Source: Haliotis rubra
Lineage: Eukaryota
DNA length: 64,000 nucleotides
Assembly: GCF_003918875.1 (NCBI RefSeq)
Contig: NW_025767134.1
Location: 744,001 to 808,000 of the forward strand
Direction of reading: 5' to 3'
Made by a program: the position numbers and the translations under genes. The notes beneath the pieces were generated by a model that did not search any database, was not told the DNA's origin, and saw only the letters and a list, made by a program, of their open reading frames with translations. Positions 7,801 to 52,577 of the stretch are shown here, in pieces. Numbering within the stretch: the first letter of the stretch is position 1; each line of letters opens with the position of its first letter.

Positions 7801-9484
7801 GTCAATTTTCTGACTGAACGCTCACATGAGGCCATCTAAACAGTTTAATGTGCTTTTCTAAGCACCATTTTTATAAGGTTGTAGATCCAGTTTTACTTAG
7901 AGAAAAAATGTGGGTGGTGCGATATTTATTGACGAGGGGCATATGTGGTTAGATTATTTATTTATACTCTATAGGGCAAATAACATTTGTAAGTAGAGAA
8001 CAAGTACACATATATATGCTGCTGACTGCTGGTTCTACATACTGCAGTGATGTTAGATAAAGGGGGGTAGGTAACAGGGGTTCTCATTTTTCAATACATC
8101 ATGACAGTATCGTTAAATCTTATTGATCGTGTGAAATGGTATTTCGACTTTGTGTAATATAACGCCCCCCTTAACCTGACAACCCTCACTCACTCCGTAA
8201 ATGATATTGAACCACCACATTTCAATTTCCATAGAGACAGAAGCTCACACCTGAATGTACATCACACTTGTCCCCTGTGTACCCCGGCTCACAGCTGCCA
8301 CACTCCCCTGTGTCTCTATTCACATCCACCTGTACAGTGTGAGGGACAAGGTGTTCTACAGTGTGGACCGTAATACTGGGGATTCTGACACGATCCTGTA
8401 CAACCATCACCATAACGTTCACACTGTGTACAGGCTGTAGGACAGTTCACGCCACAGTTATCTCCCTTCTTGCCGGCCACACATCCCTCTGTACACACAA
8501 CACGGGTGTTGTCCATCTGACAGCGAGAGTTGAGACAGGTGTCTGGACAGTCATGTTGACACTGTATACCATAGAACCTGGAGTCCAGACACTGGAGACA
8601 CTCTCCAGATGACGTCACATTGACACAACGAGGTAGACACACACCGTCAACACAGGTCACGTTGTTTACCGCCACAGTTGGTGCAGTTTATTGCATGGCA
8701 TGACTCTTTAAGCATATAAGGAAAATAATCATTAAAGATGGCACATAAATCAAACAAAGACGTGGGTTTGCACCTGTATGGGTAGAAATGTATCCCCATT
8801 TGTCTCGGGTATTTTTCAATTGACGCTACTAAATTAATGTCTTGCAAAAATAGATGCATTTCAAAGCATTGTGAACATATAATATACTGTACACGGATGA
8901 ATCTGAAAACTACTAAAAAATACACAAGCCTTTGTTTTCTTCACATATGTCGCAGTATTCCCCTCTGTACCCCGGCTCACAGCTGCCACACTCCCCTGTG
9001 TCTTTATCACATCCACCTGTACAGTTGGGGGGACAGGTAACATCACACTTGTCCCCTCTGTACCCCGGCTCACAGCTGCCACACTCCCCTGTGATCCTAT
9101 TACATCCACCTGTACAGATGGAGGGACAAGGTGTTGTACAGTTCTGACCGTAATACTGGGGATTCTGACACGGTCCTGTACAACCATCACCATAACGTTC
9201 ACACTGTGTACAGGCTGTAGGACAGTTCACTCCACAGTTATCTCCCTTCTTGCCGGCCACACATCCCTCTGTACACACAACACGGGTGTTGTTCATCTGA
9301 CAGCGAGAGTTGAGACAGGTGTCTGGACAGTCATGTTGACACTGTTTACCATAGAACCTGGAGTCCAGACACTGGAGACACTCTCCAGATGACGTCACAT
9401 TGACACAGCGAGGTAGACACACACCGTCAACACAGGTCACGTTGTTACCTTCACAGTTGTTACAAGGTGTGCTTGTAGAAGAAA
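1267..9484 (-). CDS. Gene A: receptor-type protein tyrosine phosphatase with EGF-like ectodomain, TM and single PTP domain
   Basis: Phase-consistent GT-AG exons (minus strand): 9484-8945 (EGF), [8705-8251 second EGF exon, frameshifted], 6525-6432 ([28 protein letters not shown]), 6198-6056, 5795-5716, 5601-5514 (KNRYRDVLP), 5230-5157 (DYINASFID), 4858-4822 (YVAAQG), 4469-4372 ([15 protein letters not shown]), 4194-4069 (KCEMYWP), 3789-3638 (WPDHGVP..IHCS), 2801-2666 (AGIGRTG..MVQTQ), 2098-1971 (EQYAFIY), 1480-1267 (tail, stop). All classical PTP motifs are present. Confidence 0.93.
1801..1843. repeat. (CA)n microsatellite in last intron of gene A
   Basis: About 20 CA units. Confidence 0.95.
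2932..3097. mobile_element. Small inverted-repeat element containing (CCCTAA)n; Helentron/HINE-like non-autonomous element (inferred)
   Basis: tacagaataccggatac (~2940-2956) and gtatccggtattctata (~3079-3095) are inverted copies flanking about 10 CCCTAA units (2987-3046). Confidence 0.55.
6650..7939 (+). mobile_element. Tc1/mariner DNA transposon, internally deleted and decayed, in an intron of gene A
   Basis: TIRs cacctcgtcaaaagtatcgcaccaccca (after TA at 6648-6649) and tgggtggtgcgatatttattgacgagggg. Broken transposase: [47 protein letters not shown]. Confidence 0.9.
8251..8705 (-). pseudogene. Second EGF exon of gene A carrying two +1 frameshifts
   Basis: Near-copy of 8945-9484 with AG/GT ends. 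It reads GGTAAACAAC instead of GGTAACAAC (~8665) and TGTGAATAGAGAC (~8320, premature TAG). Length is 455 = 453+2. Confidence 0.75.
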
Positions 9485-10080
9485 CTGTTGAATGGAAAAT
9501 ATAATATTGTATGCCATCTGTTCAATGTACAAATTAAACATCTGTAATATTGCCATAGTGTTCACGATTTCTGAACATGAAACATTCAGAGAGGAATGGA
9601 AGTGCTCCACAGACTAGCATATTTCTTTCGCCCAGGACAATGTTTGTTTAGTTTTTGTGAGATTCACTAAATTAATTAGTAGACAAAATTATCCTGTTTG
9701 TATGGATAAGTATCGTGCTGAGCAGCATTAAGGTCGGTGGAAGACAATCGTTCATCCTGAATGGCAATATTTGACAGACGTTGGTGATGACTCCAGTCTC
9801 AAATATATTTTCCAACCTTATAGATGTAGATAAAAGAGTATCTGCATGATATTCTGTATCGAACGGGGAAACGTATCATATCACACACCATGAATAAAAC
9901 TTACATATGTTAGAGCATGGGTTATAATTTTGGATGGGATGCAACTCAAAAATGTACTATAATCTGTAAATTTACTAAGAAAGTGTAATCCCTGATATAC
10001 CATATGTTACATTTGACCACTGTCTAAATGGCATTGTGTATTCATAAATAACAAGTTTATAAATAACGAAAACCTCTTAC

Positions 10081-49789: not shown

Positions 49790-52577
49790 CTATTCCTTAC
49801 ATGTGTCAGCTTTTGGGCAAAGATAAGTGGCAGTCACGTTTGACAAGTCACAGTTTTGCTCAATGAATATGATCGAATCCGTTTTCTTTATCAATTCTTG
49901 AACCTCTATCGATATAGTCAGGTCACAGTCATCATGGAGTGACTTTGACCTTAAACTATCATCTTTGACATGTTGTGCTATTGCACTCAACAGCGATAAC
50001 GACGAGTTTGTGTCAGCTGGTGGTTCTGAAAGGGGTCTCTCGATTACACTTGAGGGTCCACGAACGTTCGCTTGTCCTTCCACTGATAATGGTTTCATGG
50101 TTTCATGGTGCTTTATCCGTAGCTTCACGACTTCGGTGTGAGAGGAACCTGTGTTTGAACACGGCGATGAGTAGTTAATATCTCTGTCGTGTATTTCCCA
50201 GTACTTGTGTGTCCAGTAGTCGCTGTCGTGAGTATTCTCCGACCTGACTGCATGTTCCGGCTGTGTCCCATCTTCCGGTGGAGATGACCTTGAGGAACCA
50301 TGTCTGAAAACAGCCATGTCAGTGTTTAGGCTCAAATGCGCATTTGGCCCAATGGGAATTTGATTATTTAATAAAATGTATAAAAATACGTTTTTGAAAT
50401 TGTTTTGAAATGTTGACAGATATATTCATGTGATGAGAACAAGCATTTAATGACACTTATCTGAACTTATCTGACATCGCCAAGTCATAAAACAGTGTTT
50501 TGGAACCTGTGACATGATACGGTAGATTTTGTATATAATATTTTTCTCACCTTCCCAAACATTTGGGAACTTGTCGAACGACCAATATGACAATCCCAAG
50601 GAGGATAACCATCGCCAGTATTCCAGTCGTAATTTTAAATGGGAAATTTGGACCTCCTGCAGAAAAGACACTTTATATAAAATACATTATAGATATGAAC
50701 TTCAGTTAATAGGTTAAAATATTATCGTAATGGGTATTTAATCTATCCAATGAAAGCAGTCTCTCCGTCTAAGAAATTTTACTGCTGAAAGGTCGATTGC
50801 ATGTTAGATTGTCAGACTCTACAAGGTTTGAATATGGCAATACTGAATATGACTATGTTAGCACACATTGACGCTGTATGATATCGTCTTGATAATGTAT
50901 TCAGTCAGTTCACAAGCCATTAACGGTGTTGTGTTGAAAAGTATCTTTACTTATTACCCACACGGGTGAGGAGATCCCGTGTAATATCTTTTGGATATTT
51001 GCACAATGTGCAATTTAGTGATTCTCGACGTTTCACACCACTACGTTCATTCATAATATTCCATCGATTCATTGATGAATTGACCGTGCTGTAATCGCAC
51101 TGATTCGAGATTTTAAAATAGAAAAAAGAACATACAGGATTTTCGATTTGGATGCTTATTTAATGCTTCATTTCATATTTCATTAATAATATGGCGTCGT
51201 TTACTTAACATGTTTTGTAATAAAAAAAATTCTAATCGTATTTTGTAAGCAAACATGGCTACCCAGTTACCGTCAATGACCTGGTCAAGGTGGACGGATG
51301 CATTACTGGACGTGTAACGAGAATAATACAACCACTAAATTCCTATCGCGTGTATGTGATTAACACTGAACATGGTGAAATGGAAGTCGCAAGGTGTTGA
51401 ATAGACTGAAAGTGTTGCCGGAAACGATATCGAGCAAGTTGGCATCTCGCCAAAGTCTGACTTACTGAAAGATGATTTTTGACCCCTCAATCGAAAACAA
51501 ATGCCCCATATGTTTTTCAACAAGACGATAAAACTTCTTTCATACACTTCCCAGACTCATTATCATACCCGTCTCATCAGTTATGTAGGTCACATTACAC
51601 TTGTCCCCTGTGTAGCCCGACACACATTTTCCAGTGAAATTAGAAGCTCTCACCTGAATGTCTACACTCCCCTGTGTCTTTGTCACATCCGTCTCTACAG
51701 TTGGGGGGACAGGTAGCATCACACTTGTCCCCTGTGTACCCCGGCTCACAGCTGCCACACTCCCCTGTGATCCTATTACATCCACCTGTACAGTTAGAGG
51801 GACAAGGTATTCTACAGTGTTGACCGTAATACTGGGGATTCTGACACGGTCCTGTACAACCATCACCATAACGTTCACACTGTGTACAGGCTGGAGGACA
51901 GTTCACACCACAGTTATCTCCCTTCTTGCCGGGCACACATCCCTCTGTACACACAACACGGTTGTTGTTCATCTGACACCGAGAGTTGAGACAGGTGTCT
52001 GGACAGTCATGTTGACACTGTTTACCATAGAACCTGGAGTCTGGACAGGTAACATTGCAATATCCCTGCTCACAGCTGCCACACTCCCCTGTGTCTTTAT
52101 CACATCCACCTCTACAGTTGGGGGGACAGGTAACATCACACTTGTCCCCTGTGTAACCTGGCTCACAGCTGCCACACTCCCCTGTGATCCTATTACATCC
52201 ACCTCTACAGATGGAGGGACAAGGTGTTCTACAGTGTTGACCGTAATACTGGGGATTCTGACACGGTCCTGTACAACCATCACCATAACGTACACACTGT
52301 GTACAGGCTGTAGGACAGTTCACTCCACAGTCATCTCCCTTCTTGCCGGCCACACATCCCTCTGTACACACAACACGGGTGTTGTTCATCTGACAGCGAG
52401 AGTTGAGACAGGTGTCTGGACAGTCATGTTGACACTGTTCACCATAGAACCTGGAGTCCAGACACTGGAGACACTGTCCAGATGACGTCACACTGACACA
52501 GCGGGGTAGACACACACCGTCAACACAGGTCACGTTGTTACCGTCACAGTTGGAACACGGTGTGCTTGAAGAGGAAA
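49790..52577 (-). CDS. Gene G: EGF-repeat receptor whose ectodomain nearly matches PTP gene A but with a YWEI/CDL tail
   Basis: EGF 52577-51654 (924 bp, internally duplicated module), TM 50656-50551 (ITTGILAMVILLGIVILVV), tail 50303-49790 (DYWTHKYWEIHDRDINY ... LIKKTDSIIFIEQNCDLSNVTATYLCPK). Leader uncertain. Confidence 0.88.

Follow-up and report, generated by a model that had tools for sequence, protein, structure and literature searches.

Head exons of linked EGF-repeat receptors in abalone are probably homogenised by recurrent gene conversion

The subject of this study is a tandem family of receptor genes in a 64,000-nucleotide stretch of the genome of the blacklip abalone Haliotis rubra (hereafter the window), which corresponds to positions 744001-808000 of scaffold QXJH01000449.1 (GCA_003918875.1); its 23-kb stretch 28806-5690 is 100% identical to that record, gaps included. 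The genes bear the letters A to H in order of increasing coordinate, and all are located on the minus strand. Open frames and homology assign to each gene one or two Cys-rich exons of the EGF type, a transmembrane exon and a cytoplasmic part, which is a protein tyrosine phosphatase (PTP) domain in A and a single tail exon of about 200 residues with tyrosine motifs in B-H. The cluster encodes single-pass SCARF1-like EGF-repeat receptors, in which the rod of the ectodomain consists of an N-terminal module (N-module) followed by 31-residue EGF repeats. The ectodomain (head) exons of the phosphatase gene A and the non-catalytic gene G are nearly identical, and comparison with the sequences of Haliotis asinina suggests that they have in all probability been homogenised by recurrent interlocus gene conversion, in both lineages, among linked receptors with unrelated cytoplasmic parts.

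Aligned in the same frame over the first 172 codons, A exon 1 and module 1 of the G exon differ at 23 of 516 nucleotides (95.5% identity) and 14 of 172 amino acids (91.9% identity), in line with the 11 substitutions in 157 residues claimed in an earlier note on this DNA. Other paralogues of the head in the window are 71-86% identical. A BLASTN search of the 12 kb of gene A against the rest of the window found no similarity between A and G beyond the EGF exons, save for about 45 nt of the upstream intron, and the transmembrane and cytoplasmic exons of the two genes are unrelated, as the earlier note had also stated. In H. asinina, neither the A nor the G intron aligns with the shared intron tract, which is present in H. 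rubra only, whereas the G intron above it (52623-52911) is orthologous to the H. asinina G intron with 71% identity. The region of similarity ends on the 5' side near 9541 in A and 52617 in G, and on the 3' side near 8968 in A exon 1. The matching splice flanks described earlier are indeed there, but the donor flank SG/gtgagagcttc (the slash marks the exon end) is found in all three corresponding H. asinina exons as well and is therefore an old feature of the family. The twin genes F and H, which are about 95% identical through non-coding DNA too, provide a control for a true recent duplication. Because the similarity of A and G does not run through non-coding DNA in this way, it is not the product of a plain duplication.

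Fifteen of the 23 differences between A and G are non-synonymous, and four of these are Thr/Arg swaps (ACA/AGA). The earlier statement that most differences are non-synonymous is thus correct as a count, but the excess is not significant: the ratio of non-synonymous to synonymous substitution rates (dN/dS) is 0.51 over the 172 codons and approximately 1.5 over the 121-codon N-module, neither of which differs from 1 (Fisher p 0.13 and 0.74), so that the differences are compatible with neutrality. Positive selection on the head was considered and rejected as unsupported by these tests. A exon 1 contains five N-x-S/T glycosylation sequons (8946-9482) and G module 1 contains two (52060-52575); three of those in A are absent from G. 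Three of the substitutions between A and G gain or lose a sequon, among them two of the four Thr/Arg swaps.

The similarity is not restricted to A and G. The phosphatase gene P0186, also of H. rubra, matches A at 95% in the head, whereas its PTP domain is only 59% identical. At least one H. rubra phosphatase gene besides A thus bears this head, and more copies of it are found outside the window. In amino acid identity of the N-module, A and G reach 91.7% and A and P0186 95.0% within H. rubra, compared with 81.8% between the A orthologues of the two species. The head is one sequence pool for several genes and not the property of an exclusive A-G pair, and the earlier description of the two genes as a pair has to be given up on this account, the A head being closer to P0186 than to G.

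In H. asinina, the orthologues of A (P0182) and G (P0001) share one strand of chromosome CM074532.1 and are separated by about 43 kb, with G upstream, as in the window. Introns and flanks of the two species are collinear locus by locus, with 66-80% identity. Between species, the number of synonymous substitutions per synonymous site (dS) in the cytoplasmic exons is 0.20-0.28 (0.283 for the G tail), and the PTP domain is 92.4% identical between A and its H. asinina orthologue P0182, compared with 59-70% among H. rubra paralogues. The heads behave differently. A protein tree of the 80-residue module core, built from 45 copies of four species, gave an unresolved comb for the group of A, G and the PTP genes, and the analysis was therefore moved to nucleotide data of the H. 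asinina loci. In the head, dS between A and G is 0.026 in H. rubra (121 codons; 0.075 over 172 codons) and 0.083 in H. asinina, compared with 0.11-0.14 between the species. Among the informative sites of the quartet formed by A and G of both species, nine group the sequences by species, none by orthology and one in the crossed arrangement (binomial p 0.004), and six of the nine are third codon positions. Approximately unbiased (AU) tests on the head nucleotides reject both the grouping of the two A heads (p 0.018) and that of the two G heads (p 0.005), and the nucleotide tree of the head pairs A and G of H. asinina with a support of 94/91. In addition, H. rubra A exon 2 shares 95.8% identity with exon 1 of the same gene, compared with only 85.6% with its positional orthologue in H. 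asinina. The head is incongruent with the orthology of the two loci. The heads of B, C, D and E, on the other hand, group with their orthologues in other species, suggesting that the homogenisation affects only a subset of the family, namely A, G and the PTP genes.

Three signs of gene conversion were found together: a tract that is far more alike than its flanks, a tree that conflicts with synteny, and synonymous sites that are homogenised. The proposed course of events is that A and G are old separate genes, kept in the same order and spacing in both Haliotis species, and that their head exons would have been overwritten repeatedly by non-allelic (interlocus) gene conversion. Each tract would comprise the exon together with about 45 nt of the upstream intron, and would end short of the remaining intron and of the transmembrane and cytoplasmic exons.

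The earlier note had left the choice between gene conversion and recent exon shuffling, and of these conversion is favoured, with heads that follow the species while flanks, transmembrane exons and tails follow orthology. Shuffling or duplication would have copied the head exon as a new exon into the other locus in the H. rubra lineage, with no existing exon converted. It would accommodate the architecture of the G exon, which in H. rubra consists of the module and an internal 139-codon copy and in H. asinina of one module and about five EGF repeats, as well as the replaced 3' end of A exon 1 and the roughly 45 nt of intron that moved along with the exon. However, head exons are already present at the same positions at both H. 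asinina loci, with orthologous introns on both sides, which places an exon at each locus before the two species split. Moreover, the A and G heads of H. asinina also pair with one another, indicating recurrent homogenisation and not a single insertion, and shuffling is accordingly regarded as improbable. A second explanation dispenses with any exchange of DNA and supposes that very strong constraint and slow evolution of the head keep old paralogues alike. The invariant cysteine framework and a between-species dS that is lower in the head than in the cytoplasmic exons agree with it, but constraint is unable to make paralogues more alike than orthologues. Neither does it predict the nine species-grouping sites against none for orthology, six of them at third codon positions; the dN/dS of 0.5-1.5 between A and G does not indicate strong purifying selection, divergence is normal in the heads of B-E of this cluster, which group by orthology, and the non-coding tract is common to the H. 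rubra copies only. Constraint as the sole cause is therefore very unlikely.

Still less credible is an assembly artefact, in which an EGF exon has been placed at the wrong locus or alleles or haplotigs have been assembled as separate loci. Gaps and, inside A, 1-base indel errors occur in the assembly, and short contigs of at least 95% similarity are 15-60 times more numerous on the EGF exons than on the flanks, which makes these exons hard to assemble; a 122-kb chimeric RefSeq model at the locus points the same way. Against this, the copies differ at 23 sites and have unrelated flanks, the exon-intron borders at A are bridged by contigs of two read sets (X1 records 6 and 7; X2 record 27), and the chromosome-level H. 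asinina assembly shows both loci with order and spacing unchanged and a separate head exon at each. The window has five N gaps, all outside the compared exons: those at 10333-10487 and 12044-12219 are upstream of the A signal exon, between blocks collinear with H. asinina, and those within 45585-48365 are at least 1.4 kb downstream of the G stop codon.

The exons of gene A were connected by spliced contigs from the runs X10 and X13, which are of low depth, presumed to be RNA and labelled organism B. They form a minus-strand GT..AG chain from the donor at 8251 of EGF exon 2 to the transmembrane exon (X13 record 17 makes this junction) and on through the juxtamembrane exons to 5716. Overlapping contigs extend the chain into the PTP exons to 3791-3638, where the loose end reads AGIGRTGTF. 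This chain from exon 2 to the PTP exons means that an EGF head is genuinely spliced to the phosphatase. The ectodomain and transmembrane segment are thus joined on one mRNA with the PTP domain in the case of EGF exon 2, and exon 1 is not among the exons that these contigs join. The domain matches PF00102 with an E value of 6.6e-83 and all catalytic motifs of a classical PTP are present, namely HCxxGxxR(S/T), the WPD loop, KNRY and the Q-loop motif, QTQEQY among the matching sequences; judged by these motifs, A carries an intact and catalytically complete single classical PTP domain. A high-copy repeat is present in the intron between EGF exon 2 and the transmembrane exon (6530-7929), where the summed word depth in two DNA runs is 6-35 times that of the flanks.

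As assembled, EGF exon 2 of A is twice shifted by +1 relative to every other copy, at about 8665 and at about 8321. Locus-specific DNA contigs contradict both shifts: the extra base at 8321 is absent from X1 record 6 (7867-8351) and that at 8665 from X2 record 27 (8647-8995), and without the two bases the exon is open, 453 nt long and of phase 1-1. The homology of A exon 1 to exon 1 of H. asinina ends at 8988, and the usual donor of the family is replaced by ATAT/gtgaag. The sole phase-1 GT of the exon is at 8944 and leaves a T. Together with the opening AG of exon 2 this T forms the stop codon TAG, whereas splicing to the transmembrane exon would give T + GT (TGT) in frame. No RNA contig joins A exon 1 to exon 2 or to the transmembrane exon, and none covers 8302-8929. 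The RNA contigs that lie on A exon 1 have 4-5% differing letters and depart from it at 9467 or 8987. One of them, X13 record 19 (9189-9467), is 96.4% identical to A exon 1 and reads LVLKVFSTTA before the module, as in P0186; it is a transcript of another EGF-phosphatase gene with a P0186-like signal peptide. Since such a transcript matches A exon 1 this closely, short-read expression estimates for these genes will cross-map. The RefSeq-predicted isoforms of H. asinina include one with both head exons (P0182) and one with exon 1 alone (P0192). The candidate signal exon of A ends in phase 1, with CTGAACG/gtaaga. In the assembly its ATG is shifted by one base against the frame of the hydrophobic core, which may be another 1-base assembly error.

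The model of gene G, in which the EGF exon is followed by the transmembrane and tail exons, is predicted from canonical splice sites, consistent phases, open frames and a match to H. asinina. The EGF exon contains an internal repeat, with 52081-52458 being 95.2% identical to 51664-52041 and a copy length of 139 codons, and ends with ECRHSG/gtgagagc, as does its H. asinina orthologue. The motifs of the G tail are conserved across the family. A search of the window for the signal peptides of P0181, P0186, P0001 and P0182, allowing up to four mismatches, gave no match, and no signal exon of G was found. According to the earlier note, both genes contain the module twice. At the DNA level this is correct, with two exons in A and one exon with a tandem copy in G, but in A the second exon has the two assembly frameshifts and its junction with exon 1 would read TAG. 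Directly upstream of the shared intron tract, G has a fragment of an exon start that is also found in H. asinina. It was considered as a fresh footprint of conversion and rejected, because its presence in H. asinina shows it to be an ancient partial duplication. This fragment (52618-52663) has its own acceptor and, with 45 nt, could be spliced in frame as a putative micro-exon.

A number of these observations weigh against homogenisation of the heads by conversion. At 363 nt the head alignments are short, and the 80-residue core yielded an unresolved comb as its protein tree. The node joining A and G of H. rubra is weak (27/50), and the support comes from the rejection of orthology and from the site counts. 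The clades given to the AU tests followed an earlier proposal, yet the pairwise distances were known before the tests. The between-species dS of the head is itself below that of the cytoplasmic exons, to which synonymous constraint or sampling noise may contribute. Furthermore, the assembly of A has 1-base indel errors, G is predicted from sequence without a RefSeq gene call, and exon 1, the copy closest to G over its full length, has no demonstrated place in a phosphatase mRNA and leads to a stop when joined to exon 2. The RNA evidence, finally, consists of low-depth contigs that are only presumed to be RNA and come from 'organism B'.

The RefSeq annotation of the region was compared with these gene models. 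LOC124289762 (P0181, 810 residues) extends over 122 kb from a start some 59.5 kb outside the window, and eight called genes lie within it. Its residues 355-810 are the transmembrane and PTP exons of A, residues 150-354 are letter-identical to the G exon, and residues 18-149 represent a third variant, which has an additional repeat. LOC124289762 is a chimera that borrows the head exon of G. A likely reason for it is the frameshifts in the A head exon, because RNA contigs show the local splice from exon 2 to the transmembrane exon. RefSeq has no gene call for G, F or C, and gene B equals H. rubra P0014. Irrespective of how the similarity of the heads is explained, the annotation in the region is unreliable, the H. 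rubra assembly has 1-base indels in coding exons, and the sequence of the ectodomain cannot give the orthology of these receptors.

A shared head would imply a shared ligand specificity, so that one ligand may engage both the built-in phosphatase of A and the PTP paralogues and the phosphotyrosine-motif tails of G and its kin. A shared ligand with different outputs, according to the logic of paired receptors, is plausible, given that A has the catalytic motifs and that tyrosines are conserved in the tails. A more far-reaching proposal, which must be considered tentative and rather unlikely, is that the cluster forms an invertebrate paired-receptor system of abalone. The SCARF1-like head would here be a shared and fast-changing pool, maintained by recurrent conversion across several phosphatases and tyrosine-motif receptors; one ligand, whether microbial, altered-self or gamete-derived, would be read by both arms simultaneously, and any variant of the head, such as one that gains or loses an N-glycosylation sequon, would spread through the two arms together.

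In vertebrate paired receptors, the ectodomain exons are homogenised by interlocus conversion and the tails have separate histories. The abalone genes resemble the paired immune receptors KIR, LILR/PIR, SIRP, Siglec and CEACAM in being linked (43 kb apart on the same strand) and in having near-identical ectodomains (heads with 92% amino acid identity) on different cytoplasmic parts. They differ in that the abalone head is a predicted SCARF1-like EGF rod, whereas the vertebrate heads are of the immunoglobulin or lectin type. The phosphatase arm is a covalent PTP domain in abalone instead of an immunoreceptor tyrosine-based inhibitory motif that recruits SHP phosphatases, and the other arm carries the motif Y[WSY][ED]I and the conserved block TDSIIFIEQNCDLSxVxVxYLTP and has no recognised immunoreceptor tyrosine-based activation motif or charged transmembrane residue. 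Paired receptors and gene conversion are discussed in a review (PMC13358205). If the functional interpretation is true, the paired-receptor design would not be confined to vertebrate immunoglobulin and lectin receptors: one recognition head, kept in step on arms that signal differently, would have originated in a mollusc, with one arm being a built-in phosphatase. It would also offer a concrete and testable set of receptors for abalone immunology or cell recognition.

The fold of the head was predicted with AlphaFold2 for A exon 1 from 24 family sequences, with a mean predicted local distance difference test score (pLDDT) of 83. A Foldseek search with the model gave as the top match the N-terminal fragment of human SCARF1 (8hna; E 2e-7, probability 1.0, 26% identity over 164 columns), followed by the EGF arrays of Notch, Delta and laminin. 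The template modelling scores against 8hna are only 0.30-0.33, because both structures are flexible rods. At the sequence level there was no match to the head in the Protein Data Bank (PDB), and neither the head exons nor the tails gave a Pfam family above threshold, even when E values up to 5 were admitted. SCARF1 (SREC-I), the best match in predicted fold, is similar in being a single-pass protein with EGF-like repeats and a long cytoplasmic tail without a Pfam domain, and several members of the abalone family have been named 'scavenger receptor class F member 1/2-like' by NCBI. It differs from the abalone receptors, which lack a PDB sequence match, have tail motifs specific to their family and in some members have a PTP domain where others have a tail. 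The abalone receptors may be called SCARF1-like, but the likeness is one of predicted fold and general build and does not imply orthology.

The tails of B-H share two conserved blocks, DYWxxKYWEIxDxD and the TDSIIFIEQ-containing block given above. A search of 14 tails for NPxY found none, the only motif found being Y[WSY][ED]I, and a word-based search with the tail of the G orthologue (P0001 residues 318-491) returned the query itself only. No literature on this receptor family was found. MEGF10/CED-1/Draper receptors have an EGF-repeat ectodomain, a single transmembrane segment and a tail with tyrosine motifs in common with the abalone receptors, and many members carry the NCBI names 'MEGF10/11' or 'cell death abnormality protein 1-like', which derive from EGF-repeat similarity only. 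Membership in this group was rejected, as there is no Pfam EMI domain and no NPxY in the 14 tails.

Receptor-type PTPs (RPTPs) of the R3 subtype (PTPRJ, PTPRB, PTPRH, PTPRO and Drosophila Ptp10D) were considered for gene A, which likewise has one PTP domain with all catalytic motifs, and relatives of which are named '10D-like', 'H-like' or 'eta-like' by NCBI. The PDB matches of the A domain are the catalytic domains of RPTP T/mu/kappa (D1), alpha (D1), beta, H and eta, with E values of 1e-65 to 1e-74, and R3 members do not match the domain more closely than the D1 domains of other subtypes do. Membership in R3 was rejected, since the ectodomain of A consists of EGF-type repeats and not of fibronectin type III domains. 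A C-terminal Y-x-N-hydrophobic motif is typical of R3 RPTPs. The C-terminal exon of A (1270-1482) has such a motif, YQNL, which is kept in H. asinina, with the C-terminal tail differing by only a few residues between the species; YENV occurs in two other phosphatases of the family.

Homogenisation within abalone cell-surface recognition proteins is also seen in the repeats of VERL, one of the fertilisation proteins with a literature of their own (e.g., PMC2704960). The VERL repeats are, however, tandem repeats inside one gene, whereas the heads described here are exons of different genes, 43 kb apart and with unrelated cytoplasmic parts. The coordinates of the features are collected in Table 1.

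Table 1. Coordinates of the receptor exons, shared tracts and neighbouring family genes, given as positions in the window.
Feature	Coordinates	Strand	Evidence
A, candidate signal-peptide exon, 71 nt	10079..10149	minus	homology and collinearity with the first exon of the A orthologue of H. asinina
A, EGF exon 1: N-module and two EGF repeats, 540 nt, phase 1-1	8945..9484	minus	95.5% nucleotide identity to G module 1
A, EGF exon 2: second copy of the module	8251..8705	minus	94-95% identity to both modules of G and 95.8% to exon 1 of A
A, transmembrane exon	6432..6525	minus	RNA junctions 8251>6525 and 6432>6198, GT..AG ends; 100% identical to RefSeq P0181 residues 355-386
A, juxtamembrane, PTP and C-tail exons, first part	6198-6056, 5795-5716, 5601-5514, 5230-5157, 4858-4822, 4469-4372	minus	spliced RNA junctions
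A, juxtamembrane, PTP and C-tail exons, rest	4194-~4069, 3791-3638, ~2824-2666, 2101-1970, 1482-1270	minus	spliced RNA junctions; all within 1270..6198
Shared upstream intron tract, A side (AGATGTTTAAT..ATTTTCCATTCaAcAG)	9485..9541	minus	aligns with G 52617-52578, with one 30-nt indel
Shared upstream intron tract, G side	52578..52617	minus	aligns with A 9485-9541
G, EGF exon: module 1 and internal tandem copy (module 2), 307 residues, one open frame	51654..52577	minus	
G, predicted transmembrane exon (GGPNFPFKITTGILAMVILLGIVILVVRQVPKCLGR)	50551..50656	minus	AG acceptor, GT donor, matching phases; 78% to H. asinina P0001 residues 285-321
G, predicted tail exon, non-catalytic, with motifs DSDYWTHKYWEI and TDSIIFIEQNCDLSNVTATYLCP	49790..50303	minus	open to the stop codon; 68% amino acid identity to H. 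asinina P0001
Old exon-start fragment adjoining the shared tract upstream	52618..52663	minus	91% to the EGF exon start; also in H. asinina L004 13943-14030
B-F, family genes between A and G	B 18313-15693, C 27620-24410, D 34441-32161, E 39412-37010, F 44047-41759	minus	open EGF, transmembrane and tail exons
H, twin of F by segmental duplication	57100..59419	minus	segments 40852-45584 and 56173-60945 94.8% identical, including non-coding DNA

The twins F and H originate from a segmental duplication of 38158-45584 and 53309-60945, with 92-97% identity that includes non-coding DNA. The same duplication left a fragment of the EGF exon of E at 53723-53502. A 1.1-kb insertion with transposon-like open frames is located at 55050-56173. 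Within the EGF exon of H the reading frame switches at 59027-59115, where two open frames overlap, either because H is a pseudogene or through a 1-base assembly error. Broken open frames at 62500-63400 resemble, as judged by eye, a transposase of the Tc1/mariner type.

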